From the NCBI GenBank assembly GCA_000708835.1, contig DF237149.1:62001-126000 (forward strand): 64,000 bases of DNA, in the 5' to 3' direction. This DNA is from Klebsormidium nitens (taxonomy: Eukaryota; Plantae; Klebsormidiophyceae). Under the pieces are notes generated by a model. It had not been told where the DNA came from. It ran no database searches and saw only the letters and a list, made by a program, of their open reading frames with translations. The position numbers were made by a program, and so were the translations under genes. Positions 31,352 through 60,392 of this stretch are shown in pieces. How positions within the stretch are numbered: position 1 is the stretch's first letter; each line of letters opens with the position of its first letter.

Positions 31352-33075
31352 CTAGGAGATGGCGACCGCGTCTGCGTCCATCTGTACCATCGCGTCGCCC
31401 TCCGCCTTCTCCTTCTCAATCTCGTCGGCCTCGGGCAGCTTGCGGCTCTCGTCGTCTTCCTCCCACAGCACGAAGCACGCGAGCGTGCGCGGGTCTTGCT
31501 TCTCGACAGCCAGCACGTAGGGGCGCGGGCAGCCTGGGGGCGGAACGGCGGAACGGTCAGCGAACTCAGCGGAATAACAATCGGACCCGTTATTTCCAGA
31601 GCACAAAGCACGGGAGCATGCGCGGGTCTTGTTTTTCGACAGCCAGCACGTAGGGGCGCGGGCAACCTGGGGGCGGAACAACGGAACAGGTGAGCGGAAT
31701 GTCAATGGAAGATCAGCGGAACGAGGTTGGACGCATTTATCGGACAGCAAGAAGCATGCGAGCGTGCGCGGGTCTCGTCTTCCACAGCCAGCACGTAGGG
31801 GCGCGGGCACCTTGGGGGCGGAACAGCGGAATAGAAGAGTGGAACACAGCGGAACAACAAACTGATCCGTGTTGTGAGCATGCGCAGGATTGAGATTCTT
31901 CGCAGGCAGCACGTAGGAGAAGTAATCATGCGAGCCAGAAACGACAAAGTGCGTCAGCGGAATATCAGCGGAAGGTCAGCGGAAGGAACGGTTCGGGTTC
32001 TTGCTGCAGCAATACGGGCGAAGGCAGAATTTCAATGGCCAGCGCGAGATCGCAAATAAGGTTTGACGGAAGGAGCGGAAAAGATAGACAGGTCCACGTA
32101 ATTGCCCGCATCCAGCAAATAGTGGCCGCAACCCAATTCCGCTCTCACCTTGGATGGTCCGGATGAGCGGATCGGCGCCGGACTTGAGCAGAACGCGCAC
32201 AATCCCCGACAGCTTGTTGCTGATTGCCACGTGGAGCGGCGTGAAGCCATACTGGTTGACCGCATTTACGTCGGCGCCCTTCTCGATCAGCAGCTTCACA
32301 GCATCCACGTTGCCGTTGCCCTGTGAAAGAGGCGACGTAAGCGCTTTAAAATTCAAATTGGACGGTTTAAGTTGGAAAGAAACACCTACGTCAGCGCCAT
32401 TCTTACTGACATGCCTCACGGCATCCCCTTCTGGAGGAAATGCTAAAGTTTCAACACTTCCAACATCACTCGTCAGACCCTACCCTTCCACAGCGAAGTG
32501 CAACACGAATGCCAAAAAAAATGTGGACCCCCAATCCATATGCAGACCAAATGCAGGTAACAGATTCTGAACACCTATCGCTCAGAGCAATCTCAAGACC
32601 CTAACCTACCTAGATGTGCTCTCCGGCGCCGCTCGTTCGACCATGCCTCCCGTGACAAAGCGCGACACGATTGCCACCCCATACACAGACCCTAAGCGTG
32701 ATAAAAAAGCTCAAAGAAATCCAACCCAAACTCAAAAGCGAATACAAACGCAAGACCATACCCAAAACTAAATCTCAAACCCGGATTCGAACGCAAACCC
32801 AAACCCAAAGCCAGACCCATACCCAAACCCGGATCCGAATGTAAACCCAGACCCAAACTCTGGGAACCAATTCAGATTCAACCCAAACTCTAGATTAACC
32901 CACTTGGATGTACTCTCCGGCGCTGCTCGTGAGACCCTCCCCTCCCGCAGCAAAGTGCAGCGCAGTGTCGCCCGTCTCGCTGCGGAAGTTGATGCGGGGC
33001 ATCGACCGGATAGACGCCAGGACTGGCTTCCAGGCTTCGGCGCCCTTGTCTGAGTTCGCCGCATTTCGGAAGGCA
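31352..33075 (-). CDS. Ankyrin-repeat C-terminal part of the fusion gene
   Basis: GDTALHFAA, GNVDAVKLLIEKGADVNAVNQYGFTPLHVAISNKLSGIVRVLLKSGADP, followed by an acidic tail and TAG at 31352. Confidence 0.9.
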
Positions 33076-36000
33076 CTGCAACGAAAGCCGAATGAGAGGC
33101 AGTATTTAGAGTTTGCCGGACCTTTGCGGGATTCTGGGGTTCTGGAAACCTGAATTTTCTTGTTGGGGAACGAACCAGCTGGAAAGCAGGACCGATTTCA
33201 ACGCCTCGGCGCCCTTGTCCGAATTGGCCGCATGGCGGAATGCGCTGCAAGAATGATGAACAAGAATGTGAGAACGTAAAAGTCAAGAGGTTATCAAACT
33301 TTCGCGAATTCTAGGGTATTGGGCGTTCTAGGGTTTTGGGGGCATAGCCTAATTGAGGCCGTCACAGGCTTCCGAGCCTCTCCGCCATCCCCAAATCCCC
33401 CGCGTTTTGCAAAAGGCGCTGCAAAGAGGAAAGGGCTGGGTCGGAGTCTGCCAAACTAGGGCGCAGCATGTAGACAATCTGTTTACTTTGTTATATTGAG
33501 TTTGGATGCGGGAACTATTTGAGTTGGGGGGCTCTAACTTTTTGAGGGCACAGACCAAGCGGAACCCAACACACGCTTCCAATGCTCGGGGCCGTTTCCC
33601 GACTTGGCTGCATTGCAGAAAGCGCGTACAGCCGAAGATCCGTCATCGCGGACCACCCCAGCTTCGGTGCTCGCGTCCAACTGCCGCGGCCGAGGGTTCA
33701 CACTAAAGGCTTAGCGTCTCTTCAAAACCAAGGATGCCCTCCAATACAGTAGAATCCGACTTAGGGTTCACGGATAGAGAAACCGTTGGAATTCGTGCTT
33801 GCGGATAGTGTTCACGGATAGAGAAACCGGTGGAATTCGTGCTTGCGGATAGTGTTGACAAATTTCATGAATTTTGATAAGACTGAGACCGGAAGGCCAA
33901 AACAAAGAACTTTAATCTACAAGTTGGCCCACCTGAGCAGCGCCGAGTGCAAGAGCCAGCCGGCTACGACCTTATCATAAACCTGAGTCGGTTTGCCTAA
34001 AACTTCGGCCAGTATCAACATCGCCCACCTGAGCAGTACAGATTGACACAAGCAAAAGTTCAAGCCCGTAGAACCACAAGTGTGTCAGGATGACCGCCCA
34101 CCTGAGCAGCGCTGAGTGCGAGAGCCACCCAGAGATGGCCCATGGCGTTGACACGAAACTGCTTCGTTCTTAAGGATTGTAAAACCCCAAAAACGATGGT
34201 CCCAAAAATGCCCACCAGATTGACACAGTTAGAAGTTCTGCCCCTGAAAGGAGTATAGTGTCAGGATGACCGCCCACCTGAGCAGCGCTGAGGGCGAGAG
34301 CCAGCCGGAGATGGCCATAGTGTTGACACAAAACAAGATTAAATCGGTTATCAAAACCTCGCTGTCAACAATGAGTGATACCGGCAGACTTCCGTGTCCT
34401 TCGAAAGATTTATAATTGAAGTAGTGTGATATCGACAGCCCACCTGAGCAGCGCTGAGGGCGAGAGCCAGCCGGAGATGGCCATGGCGTTGACAGAGAAC
34501 CCGGTTTTCAAAACCTGGCTGTCAATAATGAGTGATACCGGCAGACTTCCGTGTCCTTGAAAAGATTTATCTCTAACTAAAGTAGTGTCATCTTGACAGC
34601 CCACCTGAGCAGCGCCGAGTGCGAGAGCCAGCCGGAGATGGCCATGGCGTGCGCGAGCGCCTTGACCTTGACACTAATTTGGACTTTGCTTTACCCCCGG
34701 TGTCAAAACCGGCCACCAGATTGGCACTGGCAGACGTTTGTGCCCTGAAAATGGATGTGGTGTCAAGATAACCGCCCACCTGAGCAGCGCCGAATGCGAG
34801 AGCCAGCCGGAGATGGCCATGGCGTGCGCGAGCGCCTTGACCTTGAGGCGCCAGCGTTCTTTCCCGGTGACGCTAGACTTGACCTCCGCGAGAGTTGGGG
34901 CGGAAGGAAGCTTGGTGGCTTCCGTAGTCGCTTCGTCCGCAAAGCGCACGATGTCCTCGATGAGCGTCATGGCACCTACGCCGATCTTGCCTGAACAACG
35001 AGAAGTTTGCCTTCCGTAAGATTGGCTGGAAAAGAGGTAGTGAAACCAAGAATGGTGGGAGTGAAATGGAGAAAACGGTACTCAATTTCGTCGCTTCGGT
35101 GGTCGCCTCGTCGGCAAAGCGCACAAATTCATCCACGTCCTGGATTCATTTCACGGCACCCACGCCACTCTTGCTAAACGCGAAAAACGTTGCGTTCTGT
35201 AAGATCTTCACAAGCTCGTAAGAAGGGATCGTCATAAATCGGATGGAGGATAACTAACAATTGCTGTTCTAGCTTTCAAATGATTAAGGGCCGCCAAAGC
35301 AGGCTACCGAAAATAGGTGCGCTCTGCGTGGGCCCATAATCGTGGCGCCGAGCTCCGGGACGCATTTGAGATCCGCTAGTAACCCCAACACCACCTTTCA
35401 AAGAAACGCACGGTGCTGTCATGAAGGTCGCCAATCGAGTACGACCGCAGACTAGACTCCTCATCAGTCTTGTGTCAAAAGAAGGTTGAAAGCACTTACC
35501 GTTGGAGAGGCGCGCTTTGCGCGGGCCCATGACTGTGGCGCCCAATTCCGTGAGCGTTTTGAGGTTCCGCTGGCAGACGGGGCTGTCGAACATGATGGAG
35601 TTCATGGCGGGCGCGGCGATGAACGGCTTCCTGCAGCGGAAAACGGAACAGCGGAACGCTTGTGAGCAGTGGTAAAATGGACAGTGCATGTTCGAAAAGG
35701 GCGCTCCCGTGCCCTTCTTTTGGAGGAAGCTTTCGAAAGCAGGTGAAGGATTCTGGTTCCGGTGGCAGCATTGATGACCAGACAGACGCTTGGCTAAGGA
35801 ATGCGCTGACGACCTGGATTCAGCACCGCATCACCACTCGTCACTCTTGCCAAGGCCGGAACGAAGGAAGAAAGTGAAACGAGAGAGGGCCTCCACGATT
35901 GTCCAGACCGCATGCATTTGAAGCTGGCGCGAAGTATCCGTCATGCACAAATCCAGAGCAGTGAAAAGCGTACTGGAGAAGGAACCAGGAGCGGCATCTG

Positions 36001-39000
36001 TATTCTGACGGCCGTAAGGTTAATCTAGAAACGTTGAAGGCAAAATTATAGCCATGTTGGAGAAGCAACGAAAATGAGATCGGGACGTGTGGTTCCCGAG
36101 GCGCTCACTTCTTCCACTCCCACGCGGACACGACTGACGTCAGCAGGTTGTCCCCGACGCCGTGGCAGATCTTGCCGAGCGTGTTACACGTCATCGGCGC
36201 AATGATGAGGATGTCGGCCCAGTCGCGCAGCCACAGATGCCGAGCAATCACCTGCGGAGGAAGCGGTCCTTGGGTTTGGATTTGTAAGTTTCGAAATATT
36301 CTGAGTCTTAGGGTATCAGGCTATTCAGGGCCTACTTTGCGGGCTCAGTGACGCTCTGAGGGCCATGCTATGATAAAGTGGATCCGGGCTGTGGCTTACG
36401 GAAAGCTGTTCTTGAGAGAGTGTTCCGGACTGTCCGAAAGTTTCTCGAAAAGGATGAAGAAGTATCCAGGCAATCGTAAGGGGGAATAGCGTAGCTCGAT
36501 TCAGAACAGACCTAAGACAAAGAAGGGAAGAAGAGAATCTGGTATCTATGGACAGAAGATGTTAAGTCGATGATGCACAGCTTGAGAGGAAGCTTTTTGA
36601 GCAAGTGAATCACTGTGCTTCGAGGCTTTCACATGGAGCAAGATAACTGCAACCTACGGCAGCGATAACGAGAAGAGGAAGCAAGGTGCTTGGTAGGAAC
36701 AGGGAGGAGATCGACCGAGCTACGTAAGGTAAAGGGTCCCGGGAACCACTTACCGGCATACCGAACGTGTACTCGAAGTTCCATTCATGGTGGTCTGCAA
36801 AAGAGAGATGATACTTCAGTTGTCGCACTCAATTTGAGCATCTTATTGATTGTTGGCCAGGTTTGAGGAATAAGCGTCCTCAGCGGCATTTTTAAAAAAC
36901 CTTACGCGACCTACAAATGCAGTCAGTACGACCGAGAGACTTAAAATTACTGCTGTCAAGTGACCGGGGCGATACGCACGTTGACAGTCTTCTGAGCTTC
37001 GACCATTCCTGCTCTCTCCTAATTTGGCCACGGTAGATGTCCGAAAAGATAGGCAACTCCGAGCACTCCATTCAAATCTCAAGACACATCACTGGAATGA
37101 CAGACCCCAGCGCAAAGCCGGGAAAGAGCAAAGCAAGCAAAGACGGCGAGGCCGAGCGTATTCTCACCGTAATAGATGTCGTCCTCTTTCAGTACCGATG
37201 TGAGGACCCGCATGCCATCCTGCAGAGAGGATTGTAGCCGATGTGAATATGCTGAAGCGAAGACGAACGCAATCAAGACGTGCTCAATCAGCAGGTCAAC
37301 GTCGAAATAGGTTTAACGCCGATTGCACCAAAAGCCAGCAGTTACTTCCACCCATCACGCAATAGCCCAATGCGGGAAAGCAGAATTTGAGAGGTGAAAG
37401 ATGAAAGGTGGCAACGAAGGCTTTCCCCGAACTCAAACGTATAAAACGGTAACCAACCCTGGAACTGTATCCAAAAGATCGAAGATGTGGCCAGCTGATC
37501 TCTCACGGTTCAGGTATCTACCGAGAGCCCAATCCGAGGAAAGAAGTCAATAGGAAAAAGAAACGCAGAGTCCCTGTCCTCAAATGAGATCCCCTCAGAG
37601 CACTCACCCGGAAGAAGTGCCGCGAGTTCTCGGACGGCTCCAATTTCAAATCGAATTTGCCGGTAGCAGCAACTCATCCTTACCGACCAGATAACTAAAG
37701 CCCAGTATAATTGGATGAAAAGACAAAGACAACACCACTCATACCAGAGAGATTCCCTCAGAGCACTCACCCGGAAGAAGTGCCGCGAATTCTCGGACGG
37801 CACCACTTTGACGTTGAACTTGCCGGTGGCCAGCAGTTCCTCCACGAGTGCCGGCAGCTTGTCGGCGGCCGATGACGCGGCGCTGCCGACTAGCACGTTC
37901 GCCTTGGGGCCGTCCCATGCGACGACATTCTTCGGCGGGGGGGGGCCGTCCCAGTGCCAGTGGGGCCCTTCGTGGTCGTAGTTCATCTGTTTGGGGGGGG
38001 AGCAAAAACGAAATTTCATTTAATAATAGGGTTTGAAGGACCCGCTGATGGCGTCGAACGTCGTCCATGAGTTTGATACGAAACACGCGTTCAAAAACTT
38101 TTCCGCGTTCAAAAACTCGTGACCTATTTTGAGGTAGAACACCTTTCCAGGGGTATGCTTCTGGAAACCAGACGAGAAAGAGGGCCGTCCCATGTGACAT
38201 TATTCATCGGCGGGGGGGGAGCCGTCCCAGTGCCCATCGTGGTCGTACTTCATCTGTGGGGGGTTGGCAAATGGGTTTAATGAAAAAACTTCATGGAAGG
38301 GAAAAGGAGGGGCGTCCCACGCGACGACAGTTCGGGGGGGGGGGGGGGCGTGCCAGTGCCAGTGGGGCCCCTCGTTATCGTGTTTTTGAAAACGTATAGC
38401 AAATGACTTCGGATATCTGCATTTCGGATATTGTTCGACAGAAACGATGTCCTATCTGACGATATTACTCAGGGTAGGGGGGGCCCGCGTCCCAGTGCCA
38501 GTGGGGGCCCTCGTGGTCGTGGTTCATCTGTTATCAGAGGAAAGATCTGATTCAGTACCTGCATTGGACTGTGGGGAGGGGCAATATGCTTTCTAAAACA
38601 ATGTGTCGTCCTCTTTCAGAACAAGCTTGGTGGGCGATGGTCGTCCAAATGAGTGTGGTCCTCGCAGTCGCCTCTGTTGTTCTTACAGCAGAACAAGAGT
38701 CTTCCGAGTCGGAAGAATGTAAAGAGGAAACGTGCAACTCGAAAACAAATGTAGAAGAAGAAAGCGCCGCTTTAGTGTTAAATCGGGGCCCTCTTAGTCG
38801 TCTGAGACGCTTTTCTTTGGGGGCAATTTTCCGGCGAACTCGTTTGTGAATCAAGGAGAGGGCATACCAGTCGAGGGGCCCATTTTCGCGCGAGAAGGTC
38901 AAAGGCAGCGTTAGAGGGGGCCCTTCTTGAGTACCTCAAGAGATTGGGACGCATAACCGAGCTCACTAAAAAGCACCCAGTTCATTTCAACGCCCCCATG

Positions 39001-42000
39001 TGAGCTTTTCGCCCCAGCTGTTTAAGACTTTAAATAACTACAACCCCTAAAAGTGCAATGACTTCGAAACCAGAGCACCTCCGCTTACCAAGCAACACCG
39101 CTTGTAGCCTTGGGAGGCCGCCATGTCGAGCGTGTACTCCGTAACGCAGCTGGCAATGCCCTTGTCGACCTCCTCTAGTTTCTGCGAAGTCTGTGCGCTG
39201 TAGTACATTAGGCACTTGGCCTCTGCTGACCCGTCCGGTTTGCAGATTGCCGTCGGCTTGCGAATGTACCTGTAGGCACAGTGAAAGGCATCAAGCTTTG
39301 GAATTCGGTTCGACTTGCCGATGCTCTTAAGGTGAAGGCAAGAGTTAGAACAGATTTAAAGATGGAAAGTGCGAAAGCGTTTGTGATAGCTGGTCGAAGA
39401 AGTTTGAAAGGCAATCACTTCAACTTGGTGGGACCTAAGGATAAGTAGAATCTACACACTTGTGGAGAAATCTACACTTCTGAAAGAGTATGGTGTGAGG
39501 CATTCTCCAAGGTGTCAAGCCTGGCCTGCACACGCTTTCTATTTGCAAACGTAGCGGCAGGAAGAATGCAGTTCGTGTACGAAAGCTTGAAGCTTTGTAG
39601 ACCTTCCTAAACAAACCCCACTTGTGGAGGGAACCGCCTATGAGGTGGGGGATAACTTACGAGCTGTTTGCGAGGTCGTCCGGTATGAAGTTCTCCAGGA
39701 TGTCGAAGGCGTCCAGCGTTACCTTGTCGATAGCGTATAGCTCGCCCATAACCTGGCCACTGCCCTGGCCGGGTCTGCATAAGCAGAGAGACGATGACAA
39801 AGTCAGCACAGGAGAAGAGGGATCGAGAGACTTTGGTTGCCACAGTGCATTGCTGTTCGGCTGCAAAAAGGTGTTGCTGAATTGAGGTGAAGACGCTCTG
39901 CACGAAAGGGCAAAGAATCTGCTTTTTGATGACCTAATGGCCCGTTCGTGCTGGTCAAACGGACAAGAGAACGACAACCGTTGAAGGAACCTCAGCTAGA
40001 CCATTGAAAGGTCCAAAGACCCTTGGAAAAACCTTCAAAGAAAGACAGCTGTCACAAATGCCGCAACGGGATAAGATCAAAAGGTCTTCCTTTCACGAAA
40101 AAGCAGACCGAAATAGTGTAGCACAATGACCAAGTCTGAACACCAGCACTTCCGGGGAATTCGCCTAGCGCAGGTGTCGATTCTGCCCAAAAGGAACCAA
40201 CAAAGGCAACAATTAGGGAGGGAAACCTACGCGTCCAGCAGCGTGCACGCACGGTGCAGCAGCCGGCACCCCGCGTTGGTGCAGCTGGGCAGCGTCGGCA
40301 CGACAAGTGGCAGGCTCTCCTTGGTGACACGTGGCCCCACGAAGTCGTGAAGCGCCTCCTCGAACTGTCCCCGGTTCGCGAACCCCTGCTTCAGCGTCCC
40401 GTATGTGAAAAACAAAAACGGCCGGTCGGGCTTCCCCGAGTAAACCCCGAGAGCCTCCGCCACAGCAACCGGGTCGCTCCCCTGTTCCCCGACCATATTT
40501 TCTTCGTCTTCTTCTTCCTCTTCATCGCTTGCGAGCCCGTCCACCGGCTGCACGTTAGCACCCGCCGCGGCTTTCTCGTCGTCGTCTTCCTCCTCGGGAA
40601 TGTTTACGGGAACGTCGTACCGGCCCGGGCGCTCCATGATGCTCGGCATCGGCTCCGGCGGCCGCGCGCGGACGGACTGCACCCGGGGGACTCCCCCGGG
40701 GCCTGCTCCGGAGGGATCCCCCTCGAGCCCGAGGATGGACATCACTTTGGGCGACATGCTGTCGGTCTGGGTGAGGTTCCGGGATTGGGCCCGGGAAGGA
40801 GCCCGCGGAATTCCGAGATTCCGGCGGAGGGTGGATTGCCGGCGCTCGTAAGTGGATGCGCGGCGCTCGGCGCTGTTGGCCATCTTGGCCATGTTGTACG
40901 CGGTGAGGGCGGACTCCGCGGCCTCGCACACGAAGGCGCTGCAGGGGGCGGAACGGCGGAATCAGGGGGGACCGAAGGGCGGGAAGGGCGGACATAGACC
41001 GGCAGTGACACAACAGAACGGACACGCGAACATTGCTCGCATCTCAAAGGCCATGGGGTACGTGACAGGGAAAGCTTAAAAAGGACACGAGACCATGATG
41101 AAACTCTGTTCTGGGGGGGAAGTGGATATACAGAGACACACACCGCCCGCTCGAAACCGAGTGTCCGAACTGGTCAAGCACAGGCAGCTCTTGCAAGCCA
41201 CGGCTATCCAATTGAAAACACTGATAAGATCGTAAGACGCGCGGAATAATCCGACAATGCAGAGACCAGACGTCAATTTCAGAAAGTCGTCCCATTCGCT
41301 TCTTTTCCAATCAAGCCCCAATCCAAACCGATCGAAGCTCCGGAGCTGAAGTTACATGACGAACACTTGCATCGACTACTCAAAGCTCATTCCCAACTTG
41401 GTACAGTACTCATTTGCAGCTTCCTAGCCCCGCTGAACAAAACTAGTCAAACCAGAACCGGTTGTTACTAACCTGTTCAGTCGGCTGGGCGCGGGCGCTT
41501 GGTTGGCGTTGGAAGTTTTGCTCACGACGCGGATCATGCCCCGGCCACGTCCGATGGACAAGTCGCGCTTCTTGCACGCGGCAAACAGGCGGCCAACCGC
41601 GCATCGCCAGTAGCGCGCATAGGAGCGGGGCTGGACACTTGCCAGGATAACCTCCTCCCTGGTTAGGGTTAAAAAACGGGTTTTGAATTAAATGATTTGT
41701 GATGAAGCTGAATGAGGTGGAGGATTGGGTTGGGGTGAGAAGTGGTGTGACCGAGGCTGGACATTCGCCAGGATCACTTTCTCCCCGGACCAAGTTCAAG
41801 TTTCCAATCGGGAAGAAAACTGTAGGAAAAGAGCCACTCAGCGTTGAGTGAAGCTACAGAGACTTGACAACCTACCGTGATCACTGACGGTTTTCCCGTT
41901 CATTTGAACTCCCTGTTTCTTGTTTGAGCCCTTGAACATAGGGCGAGCATTGGTGAGAAAGTTCCGAAGAAAGAAAGAAGGTTCACAATAAAGACTGAAC

Positions 42001-45000
42001 TCCCCGATCCTTCTTGTGGTTAGCTTAAGTTAGCGCATTGAGAAGGTCTCATCACTACGTAATCTTGCAAGCTCTGCAATCCTGTAAAGAGTGCATGCAG
42101 CTCGGCGGCTTACAAGAAAAGCAACATCGAAATTGTAAACACAAGCTCGCAAAGTCCAAGGTTATGAGGCCAAGAAGCGGGAAAGGAAGCTCACTTCTCC
42201 TTATCGACAGCTGCTACTAGCGCGTACTCTCCTCCCGACGCGTGGCTTGTAATGTTGACCTTTGCGCCCAGAGCAGTGTCGATGTCGAAGTTGAGAATCA
42301 CCGCTGTGTCTTGGTTCGCTACGGCGTCCTGCAGAAGCGGAGTGCGTCAGGATAACGTCAGCATTCTCCTACAAGTCAGTGAAGCCTTCCTCACAACGTT
42401 CTAGGTTGGAGTTCATCATCAACGTGGAGAACCTGAAGGGGCTTGAGTCAAAACGCCGTCCTTCAAGTGGTCCAGAAAAAGCTTGTGAGAGGACTCGCTC
42501 TGCAAGGTTCAATCAAAGCTTTCGCAAGCATTGACAGAGAAAATCAGATTTGCAATTGCGAGTACGTTGGCGTGGCAGGCTTTAGTCTCTGATCTATTTC
42601 TATCGTGATGGGGGCGCATTGTGAAACTTACCATCATACAGCGCCAGAATGTCTCAGGCAGAATCTTGTTGTCGTCCATGTGGTAAATCTCCACCTGCAA
42701 GATTGTCAAAGAACGAAAAGTTTGTTCCAGTCTCACAGTGCAGTCTTCAGGCGGGTCAGAAGGGTTTGAGTCGTCCACAACCGTTTTCAGCAAGCGCAGC
42801 CACAAAGCCAGAAAGTCCAGTGTACATGTCGGATGGTGAAAAACGTTGTCTCCGATATGTGGTCATCAGAGGACCGGTTGCAAGCACTCTCGACGCTTGG
42901 TTCAGTGACTTCGGAGAAGAACTGCTTCAAAGAATTGAAACATAGAGTACGACCCAGTGGAGCCCAAAAGGCGCACAAGAGGTGATGTTGGCATGAACTG
43001 TGTCAAATGATAGTATTGATCCACACTGACGCGGATTTCAATGATCCGCTCCGCCTCGACTAGATTTCGAAACCACAGCGCATGTGTCTAAAGCGCAAGA
43101 ACAACGACACGAGCTTGATAGCGCCAGCTTTGAAGCGGGGCGCATTCACCTTGACTGGCAGCTGCCTGGTCTGCACCACCTCGACCATGGTGTGAAAAGT
43201 GTCGGCGAGCGTCATGTTCCCGTCGGTCACGGCGCGCAGCGGCAGCTGGGCCGTGTGGAAGATATCGTCCACGCTCGTCTTCTTGCCGATCGCCGAAAGA
43301 GCATACGCTATGGCCGTCACGTTGCCGCACGCGATGGGGGCGTGCAGGGAGCGCTCGTCGACCTGGCACGTTGGAAGCAGAAAGCTTTTAAAGTCATCTC
43401 GTCACAATTCGAACTTAGCCCTGAACAAAGGCCTCTAGCATGAAACACCTTTACCATTTCAAGTTCAAGCTTTAATCACTCCTACACAAGACTCTCTTGT
43501 ACTTGAATTTAATCCCAAACGAGCTCAACGCTTCTGGCCTCTGTCGCCTCAACCTCCCACTGACTGCCAAGCAAATGACGCATGAGCTGATTAGCATGAT
43601 TCCTTTGCGAAAGGGCTTACATCTTGGGATCGTCATTCGTCTTGGCTGACAAGAAAAGCTCAAGACAAGTGTTAAGGCCACTACCTAAACGACCGTCTGC
43701 ACAGCCTTCGGACCACAGGTAACGATGTCCAGCGACGACCTTTCGGTGCAGGCAAAAACAAGCAGACCTGCAGAGCAACCATGAGCAGAAGCGAAAGCTC
43801 ACCCCAGCGATCCCCTTGTGAATGCCTGGCGGGTTCCAAACCGCCTCCTGGGGCCACGGGTTAGTGTACGGGTTATCCTTGTGGGTTATCCGGATGCACC
43901 CCCGCGACCGCTTAGAGGTAGAGTCCTTGTCCTGCGGCAGCGAGGGATATGACGTCAGCGAGGGATATGACGTCAGGCCTTGGGGTGCGCGTCGACCGGG
44001 AATCTACTTAACACCTGTGTTGCCTTTGTCGTACCGCCAAGTAGGAGGTACGGTACGGTTCAGGCCGAAATACGGCTTTAGAATGTACCTCTCTGACCAC
44101 GTGGATCTACTGGACCATTCAGTTGGCTCAAAGCTCGGGGATTCTCTGCAGCGCTTCTTTATCTGCGAATTGTTGGCAATCTGACTCATCACTTTCTATG
44201 GTCCCTGCAGTTTGCCAGGTTTGTGAATTTCCGGCCTTTGGTTCAGAAATCTGTGTTCAATGGACCTAGAAGAGGTAGAACTGGAGCCAGAGTCGAAAGC
44301 GTTAGGAGAAAGAACCATTGCCAGCGTCCAAGAAAGCGCAGTTTGTATGAGGTCTTTGAACGCGAATCGCGGACCCGGCTTCACGAACAGCCTTGGTCGA
44401 GACTCCGTACATCGCTTCGCTTCCGTGTATCACAACAGGAACGATGAGGCGCGAGAAAGACAAGTCTTATACGAGAAAAATGAGACTGAAACCAGGGATA
44501 AAGAGGGTGAAGAAAGTGACTACACCTGCATCGCTCGGAACATGCGGTTCGGCGTGCACCGCCAGTATCGCAGGTACTTCTTGGGGTTGACGTCAGCAAT
44601 GACGAGGTGGCCGTCCGTGTCCCATCCTCCCAGGAGCGCGAAGTGCCCACCGCCGATCGCGACTCCCTCCTGGATTCCGTGCGCGATGTTGACGTTGAAG
44701 TTGAGGAGGTACATTTCGACGTCCTTGGAGGACGCCGCCCGGCGCAGGCTGACCTCAGCAACCTGTCAGCACGAGAAAGGTCTGACGTCAGANNNNNNNN
44801 NNNNNNNNNNNNNNNNNNNNNNNNNNNNNNNNNNNNNNNNNNNNNNNNNNNNNNNNNNNNNNNNNNNNNNNNNNNNNNNNNNNNNNNNNNNNNNNNNNNN
44901 NNNNNNNNNNNNNNNNNNNNNNNNNNNNNNNNNNNNNNNNNNNNNNNNNNNNNNNNNNNNNNNNNNNNNNNNNNNNNNNNNNNNNNNNNNNNNNNNNNNN

Positions 45001-48000
45001 NNNNNNTGAGGAGGGAATGACGTCAGCTTCATGCAGTGATAAGAAGTCGTCATCAAAGCCGAGGTCGAAAGCAGAAGTGTTGGTTAAGCATAGAAGGAAT
45101 GAAGTAGGATTGGAGGGAAGGGGGACGAACAAGGAAAGCAAAGAAGAAACACCTGAGCCCACCTGTTCTGCGAAGTCCTGTTCGCTCAGGCGTCCCTCGT
45201 CGAAGAAGAAGAGCTCCACTCGGAAGGGTAGGTTCCGCCCCTCGACGTATCTACAGGCCACTTGGAACGTGTCTGCCAACGTCAGCCCCGCGTCGATGAT
45301 CATCTGGGCGGGAAGGTCCGCATAGTGGAACACGTCCTCTACAGTTGTTGGGACGCTCAGAGCGGCAATTGCAAACGCGATAGCTGCATAACAGGTAGAG
45401 GATTCGAATGGGTCAGACTAATTCAGCAGAAAAAAGCAGGATTGTTGCGATGTCACGGCAGCAGCCTGATTGAGCTTTCCTAAACAGTCGTGGAAATGGC
45501 GTACCCTGGCAGGATTTGTTTTTTTTGGGAAAGAGACGAGCCTAGAGTTATTCGACCAAAAGCACGCCTCTCCGGTAAGTGGCACGCTCACGTAAGCCGT
45601 CAGAACGAGAGGACGGGCAAGTCACCCCAGATCTTGAAGGGCGTCTGCGAATCTAGACGGAAAGTCTTCCCGCTTTCTTGCTGCGTCATTCCATTTGCTT
45701 GGCGAGCCTGACCGGCCACAACGGCACCAAACATCAATCAGGACCCACGCCCACGTTCGTTTCACCGGTCACTTTTGGTTGGTAAAGCCTTGTCGGCACT
45801 CGGGAATGGAGAAAATGACTTCCTCTTTCTGGAACCTTTCTCCGGCTATCACCCCTTCCCTCGATGGTTATTGCCATGAGCAGCTTCCAGCCGTCGGTCG
45901 ACGGGGCGATAGCCAAGGCGGGGTCGAATTTTGGCGACGGAAGGCCATGCTTCTGAGCCTCGGGCTCTGTCAGTTTGGGACACTTGAAGGAAGCTGTGAC
46001 CCAAAGCGGCGGAAGCGTCTCACCTGTGATGTTACAGCAATTGAGCGGCTGCTGGAACTCGTACAAGTGGACCATGTCGAGCGCTTGCCGCCGCCCGCTG
46101 TGCTCGAACGCCTGCCCCGACAACGTGGTTCCGCCACGTGTGATGAACGACGCCTGCGGAAGGTAGGTTTGTACCATCTGATATCTATGAGCAGTCGACG
46201 GCTCCTAGGAATTGATTGGTGCAAGGAGGGTGTGTACCAGATGGCAGTCAACGAGCAAATCGACGGCTCCTAGGAGACGAGTGGTAACAGTAGGATTGCG
46301 ACAGCGGCAGTCACTGTGCAGTCGTTGCGACAGACGGCAGTCACTGTGCAATCCACGGCATTTAAGAGATGGTGAAACGGTCAAACCTGAACTCGACTCC
46401 AAAGCCTGCTACCATTCGCCAAGCCCCTCTTGAGAATGATCCTTGCTCAAAGACCGCTTACCAACACAGGCACAACTGACGTGTTACATTACGTCAATCT
46501 GCTAACGAAAGATGGACTTCACAGACCTTTCTGAAAGGGGCTTGGCCATCCAGCGCAACCGAACAATCTGCAGAAGTATTCCTTCAAAGCTGTCAGAGAT
46601 GTCCAGTCCTCAAGTAAGGCATGGACTACGGTTCCTCAAACCTTTGCCTGAATGGTTTTGCGAACTTGCCTGCGACTTGCCCTCCGCCCAACTGGCCTGT
46701 CCCCCGCTTGGCAACGCCACCGGCAGAGGCCCAGGGACGTCGGCTCCCTCCGTGCTTCGACGGGAGGACTGGGTGATGAGCTGGCTGAAGGGGTCTCCAT
46801 CGGAAGATTGAGGGGGGGTGAGGGGGCCGCTGTCCAAAGGTCGGAGTGAGGGGGAGACGGTGGGGACGGGAGAGCCGTCGAGGGAGCGACGGGAGGAAAG
46901 CGAAGAGGGGGTCTGCAAGTAAGGAGGGGTTGAGTCTTCAGCCGTCCAATCAATGACAGGAGAAACTTCAGAGGGTCCTGAATCACACAAATTCTGCTTT
47001 TGCTTTCTTGCATTCAACGCAACGCCTGGCGGAGTCTTTGAGAAACCGACGAATCGTGCGATAAGGCTCCGTGCTCGTCACTAACAAGGTCCAAACGCGG
47101 TCTGCTGCAAGCAATGGCACCACGGCTGATGTGGGGACTGTCTCAGGCACTGAACACCCCAGGAGCTTCAGAAAAGTGCAAACTATTAATTGCACGCTGC
47201 GGTGCTTGCCAAACCAGCACGTGGCAACCGCACGGTTGACGCCCACTATTCGCACGCCTAAACATTTTGGACAGACTCCTGTCAGGCAGCCACGTGGCAT
47301 TCTCAGGAGGAGAGAGTGGCACACCGCATTGTAGGTCATGTACTTGTCGGCGTTGGGGGTGAAGCGGTACAGCGAGTCCGTGTTTTTGAACGACTGGTTC
47401 TTGTTCACGTGCTGGATAAGCTGCAACAGGACTCAGAAACTTAGAACAGCGTTCGCTGAACCACTTGTACAAACCATCATTTGAAACATTATCTGTAATC
47501 TGTAAGCCCCATAAGGTTGAGATTATGGGGCGCAGTCTCTTTGCGCTGCTGCGACACCAAGCAAAGAAAAGCAAGCCAAAACAGAAAGTCTGGCTCATCA
47601 TTTATCAACACGGGAGGACTTCAGGGGCTTCTCGGAGTAACAAAGTGTGCCAACTTCTCTCCCATGATCAACATTTCCGAAAATGGATCAAACCCAAATA
47701 TCCTTGAAAAACAAACTTCAACATGGAGTTGCCACCAGTGTAGGTGCAGCCCCAACCTGCGCCCTCCTGGACGTTCCCAGCTCATGAAAAACCAAACACT
47801 CTTCTTTGTCAGGTCTGAAATTACCAGCCTGTTCTCCGATTACTTCCTCTGGCAAGAATTCGCCCCCAGTCACAAAGCCGCCAGCCACATGGTATCAGCA
47901 CTGTCAGCGATTGAAAGGAACCCTTAACATACATGGAAAAACCCTAGATACCCATAGGTCTTTATGAGCCAAATGCGCCATCTCAAGCTCGCTAGCTCTT

Positions 48001-58500: not shown

Positions 58501-60392
58501 CTCCGCTCCCACTCCCAAAACCCACAGCCAAGGGAAAGCGCTGGCCGTTCGATCTGCAAAACCCACAGCCGAAGACAAACGTTGGCCGTTCGATTTGCAG
58601 ATGGGCTCCTACACTGGCGGCACCCCCGGTCGCCTCCTCGAGGTCTATCCCCCCTTCCCGACCGACCTCGCCTCCGGCCTCAAGCCCGCCTTCGCTGAAT
58701 ACGGCACGGGGGGTCCCGGCGAGGACACAATGAACCCCCACGGACTGGACGTGAACGCCGACTCGACCATCGCAATTACCGGAGACTTCATCGAGCCCGT
58801 TTCGCTCTTCGCGGGATCCCCTGACCAGATCAAGTTCCGCGACACCATCCGCATCTGGCGCCGGAACGTGAACGGAAGCACCGGGTGGACCAACACCAAG
58901 ACGTTCACCGTGCCCGGGGCTGGGGGCGTGCAGGACGTGCAGGTGCGGTGTTCCGTTTCCGGTCGTACACTGTGTTCCGGTCATACACGCGTCAGTCTCC
59001 GGCGGCAGGATTGATCACGACAGAGTCAAGTCTTGCTCATGTGTTCTGGTAATGACCGCGTCTTTCTCTGGTGGCGAGATAGGATCTTGTTCAGGGTCCA
59101 TTCGTTTTCATTTGTTCATCTATTTCATCGTTCTCGCGTCTTTCCCTGGCGGCAGAATGGAATCTTGTCAATCCAGACGAAATTTGCCATTTCATCGTTC
59201 TCGCGTCTTTCCCTGGCGGCAGAATGGAATCTTGCCGATTGATAGACTAGACGCTGGAGGCTTGAGACGGCAACTTACACGAAATCTGCCTTTCTNNNNN
59301 NNNNNNNNNNNNNNNNNNNNNNNNNNNNNNNNNNNNNNNNNNNNNNNNNNNNNNNNNNNNNNNNNNNNNNNNNNNNNNNNNNNNNNNNNNNNNNNNNNNN
59401 NNNNNNNNNNNNNNNNNNNNNNNNNNNNNNNNNNNNNNNNNNNNNNNNNNNNNNNNNNNNNNNNNNNNNNNNNNNNNNNNNNNNNNNNNNNNNNNNNNNN
59501 NNNNNNNNNNNNNNNNNNNNNNNNNNNNNNNNNNNNNNNNNNNNNNNNNNNNNNNNNNNNNNNNNNNNNNNNNNNNNNNNNNNNNNNNNNNNNNNNNNNN
59601 NNNNNNNNNNNNNNNNNNNNNNNNNNNNNNNNNNNNNNNNNNNNNNNNNNNNNNNNNNNNNNNNNNNNNNNNNNNNNNNNNNNNNNNNNNNNNNGCCTCC
59701 AGCGTCTATTGTATCAGTCGGCAATCTGCCTTTCACAAGCCTCCAGCGGCCAGATTCTCAAGCCTCCAGCGTCTATTGTATCAGTCGGCAGACTTATATT
59801 TGGTCCATCTTAAGCCTTGAGACTTCAGCTTCTTGAGTTTCTCGAGTCTAACATTCAACCTCTCTTCTCTTCCCTTGGACAGTTCATCCCCGGCGATGCC
59901 CAGCAGCGCGCGCTCGCGACGCTCGTCAACGGCAACGGCCTGGCGCTGGTCAACCCGACGACCGAGACCGTGTCCGTCGTCTACAACTTCGCCAACGAGA
60001 CGTGCGTGCCCCACGTGTCCGACATTTCCAACGACGGCAAGAAGTACTTTGTTTCGTGCATCGGCCTCGGCCAGGTGTGGATGATCGACATCTCCAACCC
60101 CGAGGCGCCCTTCAAGCTCGACGCCAAGGACACCGGCGGTCCCAGCTCCAACCCCCACTTCGTGCGCCTCACCCCCAACGACGACCGGTTGTTCGTCTCA
60201 AACTACTTCGTCACGGCCGGGCTCGCGTCGTCCCCCGGCGCGCGGAATGTGCTGTCGTTCAACGTGGGGGCGACCAGCCTTGAGGCCGACACTGCCTTCG
60301 GGTCGCTGTCGTTTGCTAACGTTGTGGACGACAACGGTGTGCAGACCAACTCCCGCCCCCACGGGATGACGGTCAACTATCTGAGCTGCTAG
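55542..60392 (+). CDS. Selenium-binding-protein (SBP56)/methanethiol-oxidase-like beta-propeller with two N-terminal Cys-rich modules; first exon not located
   Basis: Exons 55542-55709, 56276-56443, 56979-57103, 57540-57785, 58601-58942, 59883-60392 are in phase. Motifs LLYVWAG, DYVGVVSID…YGK, GTEAHHMG, MGSYTGGTPGRLLE, NPHGLD, DFIEP, GGVQDVQFIPG, NPHFVRLTP, SNYFV, RPHG. Confidence 0.8.
56720..56915. repeat. Intronic degenerate minisatellite
   Basis: cttcttatgcactca twice; ctcgggttaactcattctcgggt…agcact units repeated. Confidence 0.7.
57790..57970. repeat. Intronic minisatellite of about 30 bp, 5-6 degenerate copies
   Basis: gttctgaagatcggttcagaaagga… repeated. Confidence 0.8.
58404..58529. 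repeat. 28-bp minisatellite, 4.5 perfect copies
   Basis: caaaacccacagcctccgctcccactcc starting at 58404, 58432, 58460, 58488 and 58516 (partial). Confidence 0.95.
59296..59694. other. Assembly gap (399 N) inside an intron of the SBP-like gene
   Basis: Run of N flanked by short repeats. Confidence 0.99.

Follow-up and report, generated by a model that had tools for sequence, protein, structure and literature searches.

Background

The described systems closest to the gene treated here are phytochelatin synthases (PCS) such as AtPCS1 and NsPCS/Alr0975 of Nostoc (PDB 2BTW), flavoproteins of the HFCD family, and gamma-glutamyl cyclotransferases of the GGACT type. The HFCD flavoproteins include the phosphopantothenoylcysteine (PPC) decarboxylases (AtHAL3a, human PPCDC, Dfp) and the LanD enzymes (EpiD, MrsD). 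HFCD enzymes require a C-terminal N-acyl-cysteine, and EpiD/LanD stop at the enethiol. GGACT prefers gamma-glutamyl-amines, and GGACT-type enzymes are poor on gamma-glutamyl-alpha-amino acids. Here we analyse a stretch of 64,000 nucleotides from the streptophyte alga Klebsormidium nitens (GenBank assembly GCA_000708835.1, contig DF237149.1, positions 62,001 to 126,000), hereafter referred to as the window, in which one gene on the minus strand joins relatives of all three enzyme families in a single protein. All positions are those of the window, and all features of the gene lie on the minus strand.

In AtHAL3a, oxidative decarboxylation is the task of His90, Asn142 and Met145, and Cys175 acts in the subsequent reduction of the enethiol (PMC9604783). 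The nearest precedent is TdaF, a PPCDC-like flavoprotein of the tropodithietic acid pathway of roseobacters for which oxidation and decarboxylation of a cysteine-derived thiol adduct have been proposed (PMC7497051). TdaF comes from the same bacterial group as many members of the fusion family described below and is likewise related to sulfur metabolite chemistry, but it is a separate enzyme encoded in a gene cluster, carries no PCS-like or GGACT fusion partner, and is proposed to use another substrate. Our search of the literature retrieved no description of the fusion architecture, nor of gamma-glutamylcysteine as a substrate of an HFCD enzyme. Since the proteins are already deposited in public databases under generic names, the gene is not novel in itself; what appears new is the recognition of the three enzymes as one conserved unit and the chemistry predicted for it.

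Gene structure and transcript evidence

A sequence-only reading of the window had placed the fused catalytic domains between 46153 and 34780, and this assignment is borne out by contigs of spliced RNA and by a single reading frame. Both ends of the interval are splice sites: the first PCS-like exon has its acceptor at 46153, and the last HFCD exon has its donor at 34780. On the basis of splice sites, reading frame and alignment with an ortholog, this catalytic core resolves into 17 exons with 1036 codons and no stop; the short open frames split by introns on the minus strand amount to a eukaryotic gene structure. The full gene model extends from an ATG at 50957 to a stop codon at 31352 and comprises 25 exons, 24 introns and 1527 codons. 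The core belongs to a single protein of about 1527 amino acids (aa), consisting of two DEP domains, an active and a dead PCS-like domain, a linker, a GGACT domain, an HFCD domain and ankyrin repeats.

RNA-type contigs of four public runs (from four studies and under two organism labels) were aligned to the segment 37450–43449. They contain only about one quarter of the genomic words over this segment, as expected of spliced RNA. One long contig per run (3.4–5.7 kb) joins the same eight exons, numbers 10–17 of the model (43363–43147, 42691–42631, 42327–42194, 41657–41473, 40938–40231, 39774–39658, 39266–39089 and 37986–37770), with GT..AG at every joint and zero mismatches. Together the eight exons form a single open frame of 605 codons that leads from the second PCS-like domain through an acidic linker and the GGACT domain into the HFCD domain. 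Since the fusion is seen in the frame of a spliced transcript, it is not an annotation artefact. The contigs extend beyond the joined exons to 43804 upstream and 37218 downstream, and one contig of 5706 nt reaches 2175 nt upstream and 1714 nt downstream of the aligned segment, which leaves room for the full coding sequence and untranslated ends.

While RNA joints cover exons 10–17, exons 1–9 and 18–25 were placed from splice sites, the open frame and conservation with the ortholog, a 180-kb metagenome contig (loci L001 and L004) whose similarity to the window is restricted to exons. The exon structure and all catalytic residues named below are kept in L001/L004 and in two further relatives, L002 and L003. 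The synonymous divergence between the window and L001/L004 is about 1 (dS), and the dN/dS ratio is 0.066 for the first PCS-like domain, 0.078 for the second, 0.089 for GGACT, 0.041 for HFCD and 0.31 for the linker; all domains are under purifying selection.

The ortholog also decided between alternative exon placements. A weak acceptor near 36270, which would join exon 18 directly to exon 20, was ruled out in favor of a 41-nt exon 19 at 36794–36754. For exon 5 an Arg-rich frame was ruled out and replaced by a Ser/Pro-rich frame followed by a GC–AG intron. This exon, a Ser/Pro-rich linker at 47006–46670, was located by tblastx against the ortholog with donor and frame checked; its acceptor at 47006 is uncertain, with 47066 as an alternative. 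The intron that separates it from the first PCS-like exon (46669–46154, donor CAG|GCAAGT) is absent from L001, where tblastx shows the same frame reading through, and thus represents a difference in intron presence between close relatives. A second difference concerns the first part of exon 14, a low-complexity acidic linker at 40938–40441 that is included in the RNA contigs. The conserved halves of this exon are separated by 107 nt in the window (40511–40618) compared to about 1.1 kb in L001 (13589/13590 to 14737/14738), indicating an extra intron or insertion in the acidic linker of the ortholog.

Catalytic residues of the fused domains

The residues required for the three activities are present and conserved, in agreement with the sequence-only reading: Gln, Cys, His and Asp in the first PCS-like domain, YGxLK and Glu in GGACT, and His, the Asn of PxMN and Met in HFCD. 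For the PCS-like part the agreement extends to the first domain, and only one of the two copies can be catalytic.

PCS-like domain 1 is encoded by exons 6–9 (46153–46024, 45383–45163, 44762–44526 and 43931–43804) and scores 234 bits with a profile of its family. All four catalytic columns are kept, with Gln350 (oxyanion) at 46054–46052, Cys356 at 46036–46034, His473 at 44645–44643 and Asp490 at 44594–44592, and the domain is predicted to be active. Domain 2 occupies the RNA-joined exons 10–13 (43363–41473, 170 bits) and has His/Ala, Gly (43326–43324), Glu (42229–42227) and Ser (41639–41637) at the positions of Gln, Cys, His and Asp. Without the Cys-His-Asp triad it cannot be a cysteine peptidase, and its low dN/dS (0.078) indicates that it is functional in a non-catalytic way.

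This family profile, built from 12 homologs of a PCS-like exon, matches NsPCS/Alr0975 of Nostoc at E = 2e-10. Full-length homologs exceed the cutoff of the Pfam family PF05023, compared to E = 0.018 for a single PCS-like exon of the window. Individual exons give low scores since introns divide the domains, and the PCS-like and GGACT assignments were made through such indirect matches. The subfamily is marked by the signature FQQP[IL]NCCN[IV]T ... GGGHF ... ADV[NH]P, and the pairing of an active with a degenerate copy is common in it. Like AtPCS1 and NsPCS, the window protein belongs to the papain-like fold family, aligns Gln, Cys, His and Asp in domain 1 and has the C-terminal motif D..S...RG. 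Unlike them, it represents a remote subfamily with a tandem of one active and one dead copy and has no Cys-rich metal-sensing domain, and its glutathione specificity is a prediction. No Pfam match to the Cys-rich metal-sensing C-terminal domain of eukaryotic PCS was found on any exon or open reading frame (ORF) piece of the window; the dead copy sits where eukaryotic PCS would have this domain.

Elsewhere the subfamily occurs in other settings. Stand-alone proteins of about 190–250 aa are present in Lyngbya, Fischerella, Moorena and others, and the PCS-like loci L009–L029 come from cyanobacteria, Halieaceae and Kofleriaceae. Members are also fused to EF-hands (L040), once together with an additional glyoxalase/VOC domain (P0018/P0033 in L007), and, in picocyanobacteria-like contigs, to a cNMP-binding domain.

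The GGACT (AIG2-like) domain spans 40440–39089, that is, the end of exon 14, exon 15 and exon 16, at RNA-confirmed joints. The Pfam family (PF06094) matches it in two collinear pieces on two exons, with 13.7 bits for profile positions 1–25 and 17.6 bits for positions 50–74, each below the cutoff of 22.8 bits. When joined, the domain matches the bacterial fusion proteins described below at E = 2e-29, and the GGACT domains of those proteins score 52–58 bits. It carries the motifs FFTYGTLKQGF (YGTLK at ~40403) and GELY, in which Glu (39743–39741) is kept in 83/83 and Lys in 83/83 family members. The Glu of GELY aligns with the GEVY motif of E. coli YtfP, a protein too divergent to be aligned with the window domain outside the catalytic motif. 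Human GGACT (PDB 2KL2/3JUB), YtfP (1XHS) and the GliK-type cyclotransferases of glutathione-derived natural products share with the window YGxLK and the Glu of G-E-x-Y. In contrast to these enzymes, the window domain is part of a fusion protein and contains an insert of about 20 residues with the motif C-x-N-x-x-C-x-x-L-H-R (40283–40250), whose two Cys and His-Arg are invariant throughout the fusion family and which is absent in ordinary GGACT/YtfP proteins. It is possible that the insert is a metal or redox site.

The HFCD domain is encoded by exons 17–22 (37986–37770, 37218–37168, 36794–36754, 36251–36109, 35630–35500 and 34990–34780). Exon 17 is RNA-joined, the start of exon 18 coincides with the loose end of the contigs, and exon 19 was placed by conservation. 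Exon 20 scores 41.2 bits with the Pfam family Flavoprotein (PF02441; cutoff 22.7), and the best relatives of the domain among solved structures are AtHAL3a and human PPCDC. In the alignment with AtHAL3a, the window His (36239–36237) matches His90, PAMNSIMF (with its Asn at 35602–35600) matches PAMNTLMW, and RLSNGK matches RLACGD, which puts Asn (35503–35501) at the position of Cys175. Among 86 family members the catalytic His, the Asn of PxMN and the Met of PxMNxxM are invariant (86/86 each), and the Cys175 position is Asn in 83, Ser in three and Cys in none. The PxMN motif reads PACN in 85/86 members, compared to PAMN, with Met in place of Cys, in the window and its ortholog. The fold, the catalytic His and PxMNxxM are shared with both PPC decarboxylases and LanD enzymes. 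The window domain differs from PPC decarboxylases in having Asn for the reducing Cys, as in LanD enzymes, although in overall sequence it is nearer to PPCDC, and it is always fused to ankyrin.

The fusion in bacteria and protists

The PCS-like alignment was scanned against one genome per bacterial and archaeal species, which yielded 34 loci. At five of them (two in Halieaceae, one in Aestuariirhabdus and two in Rhodospirillaceae) a single ORF of 1180–1230 aa also matches the window HFCD (E = 6e-55) and GGACT (E = 2e-29) sequences, and the Pfam families Phytochelatin, Flavoprotein, Ank and GGACT all exceed their cutoffs in these bacterial fusion ORFs. When the C-terminal half of one bacterial ORF was searched against a large set of proteins, about 80 clusters (at 90% identity) proved to combine PF05023, PF02441, Ank and PF06094. 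These are mostly ~1190–1220 aa long, include Ruegeria, Seohaeicola, Sulfitobacter, Rhizobiaceae and Rhodospirillaceae, and bear only the database names "flavoprotein", "hypothetical protein" and "gamma-glutamylcyclotransferase". Eukaryotic members come from the dinoflagellate Biecheleria cincta, the diatom Detonula confervacea and metatranscriptomes. The bacterial fusions found in the genome scan overturned the notion that the fusion is confined to Klebsormidium. A protein search with one PCS-like exon returned PCS-like proteins only, none with GGACT or HFCD. Homology searches started from exon regions, limited by word and length filters, yielded one close relative or no match, and searches of solved structures with individual exons gave mostly nothing or spurious designed repeat proteins (PPR, Kelch-like).

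The domains are arranged in three different orders. Bacterial proteins have [cNMP-binding-like]-PCS-PCS'-Grx-like-HFCD-ANK-GGACT, where PCS' denotes the dead copy and Grx-like a glutaredoxin-like domain; the protist proteins (Biecheleria, Detonula) have [Grx-like]-HFCD-ANK-GGACT-PCS-PCS'; and the order in the window is DEP-DEP-PCS-PCS'-GGACT-HFCD-ANK. The additional domain of the bacterial and protist forms is a glutaredoxin fold (profile match to plant and human glutaredoxins with E = 2e-11) that has Asp at the position of the active-site Cys and retains the cis-Pro of the glutathione site. This segment was not found in the window protein, where GGACT precedes HFCD instead of following the ankyrin repeats.

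The proteins of Ruegeria sediminis (WP_138844249), Sulfitobacter sp. JL08, Biecheleria and Detonula (the first two P0055 and P0110 in our set) share with the window the pair of an active and a dead PCS-like domain, an HFCD domain (with LSNG), ankyrin repeats and a GGACT domain with the Cys..Cys..His-Arg insert. Identity to the window is 35–43% in the HFCD-ankyrin and GGACT parts. The differences are the domain order, DEP-DEP in place of the cNMP-binding-like domain, the missing glutaredoxin-like domain, PAMN instead of PACN, and the 24 introns. The PCS-like catalytic residues are conserved across the family (Gln in 82/82 members, Cys in 80/82, His in 82/82, Asp in 78/82), and the window retains 78–84% of the alignment columns with at least 95% conservation across the fusion family.

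The sequence-only reading had asked whether bacterial homologs of the three enzymes cluster in operons. The scan revealed more than that, namely fusions in single ORFs of bacteria and protists, in three orders and often beside a glutaredoxin-fold domain. The genes adjoining the bacterial fusions (MFS transporter, PQQ dehydrogenase, helicase, nucleoside kinase, adenylate cyclase, methyltransferase) are not conserved, and no operon context was found; they do not discriminate among the reaction schemes considered below, apart from the housekeeping one, which is dismissed on other grounds. In a tree of the HFCD-ankyrin part, the bacteria form one shallow clade, the eukaryotic sequences are deep and diverse, and the window falls outside the bacterial clade on a branch of 2.6 substitutions per site. 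Horizontal transfer somewhere in the history of the family is likely, and we propose no direction for it.

A possible reaction sequence

That the PCS-like, HFCD and GGACT modules have been kept in one chain through three rearrangements in distant lineages leads us to consider them almost certainly functionally coupled. Our preferred interpretation is that the three enzymes act one after another on glutathione, or on a gamma-Glu-Cys-X thiol related to it, and that the HFCD step ends at an EpiD-like enethiol. We assign this interpretation a probability of roughly 45%. The PCS-like cysteine peptidase would cut off the residue that follows Cys in gamma-Glu-Cys-X and expose a C-terminal cysteine. 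The FMN-dependent HFCD domain (FMN, flavin mononucleotide) could then oxidatively decarboxylate the exposed N-acyl-cysteine and halt at the enethiol, as EpiD/LanD do. Loss of the carboxyl group would leave a gamma-glutamyl-amine in place of the gamma-glutamyl-amino acid. Compounds of this class are the substrates of GGACT, and the GGACT domain could in turn free 5-oxoproline together with a two-carbon amino(ene)thiol. What is released at the end would be an aminoenethiol or the compounds formed by its hydrolysis, or else cysteamine. The dead PCS-like copy is probably the partner half of a dimer contained in one chain. The conserved fusion is strong comparative support for joint action on a glutathione-like thiol, and the glutaredoxin-like domain of the relatives points to glutathione. 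An enethiol product is predicted, unless reduction occurs by other means, because there is no Cys at the Cys175 position.

Several points weigh against this proposal. The PCS-like domain is distant from the PCS enzymes that have been tested, with the window exons alone falling under the Pfam cutoff, and the genes next to the bacterial fusions supply no pathway context. The window protein forms a very long branch and has lost the glutaredoxin-like domain. The alga has Met where 85/86 members have the Cys of PACN, and it may differ from the rest of the family. If Cys175 is missing, the flavin requires another route to reoxidation. Finally, the ankyrin and DEP domains would equally fit a protein-directed or signalling role.

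Among the alternatives, the one that survives best leads to cysteamine, as the sequence-only reading had proposed: glutathione would be converted to gamma-Glu-Cys, then to gamma-Glu-cysteamine, and finally to cysteamine and 5-oxoproline. FMNH2 would here reduce the enethiol, with the proton coming from another donor. This route shares its domain logic with the sequence ending at the enethiol, and the Cys of PACN, present in 85/86 members and missing in the alga, is one candidate for a reducing donor that could replace Cys175. However, Cys175 is required for the reduction (PMC9604783), and its position is occupied by Asn in 83/86 members and never by Cys. The window and its ortholog, having PAMN, are without the PACN Cys as well. 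The gamma-Glu-cysteamine and cysteamine steps are accordingly not what the sequence predicts, with Asn in place of Cys175 in the window and in 83/86 relatives, and we regard this route as doubtful.

An unlikely scenario, in our estimate, is that only the PCS-like and GGACT domains are catalytic, converting GS-X to gamma-Glu-Cys-X and further to Cys-X and 5-oxoproline, while the HFCD domain has a trimerising, flavin-sensing or regulatory role. HFCD proteins are obligate trimers or dodecamers, which would suit such a role. Yeast Hal3 exemplifies non-catalytic functions of HFCD folds (PMC9604783), and PCS and gamma-glutamyl cyclotransferases are established steps in the cytosolic catabolism of glutathione and its conjugates (PMC10295655, PMC8464934). 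Nevertheless, the invariance of His, Asn and Met in 86/86 members together with the lowest dN/dS in the protein (0.041) fits catalysis better than a scaffold. The known weakness of GGACT-type enzymes on gamma-glutamyl-alpha-amino acids also speaks against this scenario.

It is improbable, and we would give it little weight, that the target is a protein or peptide, such as S-glutathionylated proteins, phytochelatins or a peptide ending in Cys, which the ankyrin, DEP or glutaredoxin-like modules would recruit. LanD-type HFCD enzymes do act on peptides, the ankyrin repeats always follow HFCD, and the relatives contain a redox-dead glutaredoxin fold. Yet no partner or precursor gene is conserved beside the bacterial genes, and the GGACT and PCS-like folds are those of enzymes acting on small molecules or peptide tails. 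The notion that the HFCD domain is a housekeeping PPC decarboxylase of coenzyme A synthesis, fused by chance, draws on AtHAL3a and human PPCDC being its best solved relatives, but it is effectively excluded by the family-wide loss of Cys175 and by orthology of the window domain with the fused bacterial domains (~40% identity over ~349 aa including ankyrin) rather than with stand-alone PPCDC; the fusion is also conserved in three domain orders.

Terminal modules

Exons 1–4 (50957–50757, 49208–49114, 48479–48242 and 47420–47344) contain the start codon and two DEP domains, and were placed by Pfam matches, exon-only conservation with L001 and an open exon chain. The DEP matches lie on exons 1 and 3, with 34.5 and 36.1 bits against a cutoff of 32.7. 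Exons 23–25 (33075–32904, 32320–32149 and 31533–31352) encode two ankyrin repeats (Pfam Ank, 57 bits), an acidic tail and the stop codon; they are conserved with L004 and form the best open chain. The ankyrin unit is homologous to the one behind HFCD in the bacterial fusions.

A regulatory or localising role is probable for the DEP domains, and for the cNMP-binding-like domain that bacteria have instead. The occurrence of N-terminal DEP, cNMP-binding-like and EF-hand modules across the wider PCS-like family suggests regulation by signals. In Aestuariirhabdus (locus L037, 7130–10132) a fusion gene with a cNMP-binding-like N-terminus adjoins a gene for an adenylate/guanylate cyclase-AAA-TPR protein, a pairing not present at the other loci; this neighbor hints at control by cyclic nucleotides.

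Assembly gap and repeat-bearing introns

The gene contains an assembly gap (44793–45006) located between exons 7 and 8, with canonical splice sites on both sides. The flanking donor (45163|GT) and acceptor (AG|44762) are both in phase 0. The protein alignment with the ortholog is contiguous over the gap (residues 52–118, then 117–196), positions 20–209 of the family profile align to residues 20–217 with no hole, and the spacing of the conserved motifs agrees with that in the bacterial relatives. On these grounds, judged from sequence comparison, the gap is intronic and no hidden exon is needed. A second gap of 399 N (59296–59694) lies outside the fusion gene.

The intron upstream of exon 17 harbors three degenerate copies of the 5' part of that exon (38182–38530), detected by blastn against the ortholog and also found in L003. 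They bear a "GPHWHW..PPPP" motif, and a copy of the 3' part of exon 17 is located in the downstream intron (37521–37673). The copies at 38182–38530 are pseudo-exons outside the main spliced form. The only contigs over this region, at 38041–38231 and 38407–38718, are low-depth contigs of run X1, which may derive from unspliced RNA or from a minor isoform.

Tandem copies of sequence from the 3' end of exon 22 (33900–34750) fill the 1.7-kb intron behind that exon, in which the beginning of exon 23 is also partly duplicated; in the ortholog these sequences are single-copy. The copies in this intron include a Tandem Repeats Finder array with period 161 at 34256–34650, one with period 44 at 33762–33856, and a further segment at 33187–33247. 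In three runs the De Bruijn contigs are interrupted at this intron or close to it, 27 nt into exon 23 for X5 and X7 and at the end of exon 23 for X1.

Conclusions

We know of no route from glutathione to C2 aminothiols of the cysteamine type, and cysteamine is thought to arise only from the breakdown of pantetheine; several marine organosulfur currencies likewise lack a settled origin. The retention of the modules through three independent orders, in bacteria and three eukaryotic lineages, makes a strong Rosetta-stone case for a real pathway. We tentatively suggest, at somewhat less than even odds, that the protein could provide a signal-regulated route contained in one polypeptide, from glutathione (or gamma-Glu-Cys-X) to glycine, CO2, 5-oxoproline and a reactive C2 aminoenethiol or cysteamine, common to marine roseobacters, gammaproteobacteria, diatoms, dinoflagellates and a streptophyte alga. 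Because the Ruegeria and Sulfitobacter members are culturable and genetically tractable, the hypothesis is directly testable.

The family represents a natural PPCDC-like flavoprotein that has lost its reducing cysteine, and it appears to include a PCS-like enzyme built as a dimer in one chain with one half dead. If the proposed chemistry is correct, this would be the first HFCD enzyme to act on gamma-glutamylcysteine. The pathway could then represent a new origin for organosulfur compounds of the cysteamine, hypotaurine or taurine type, or supply an aminovinyl-thiol building block.

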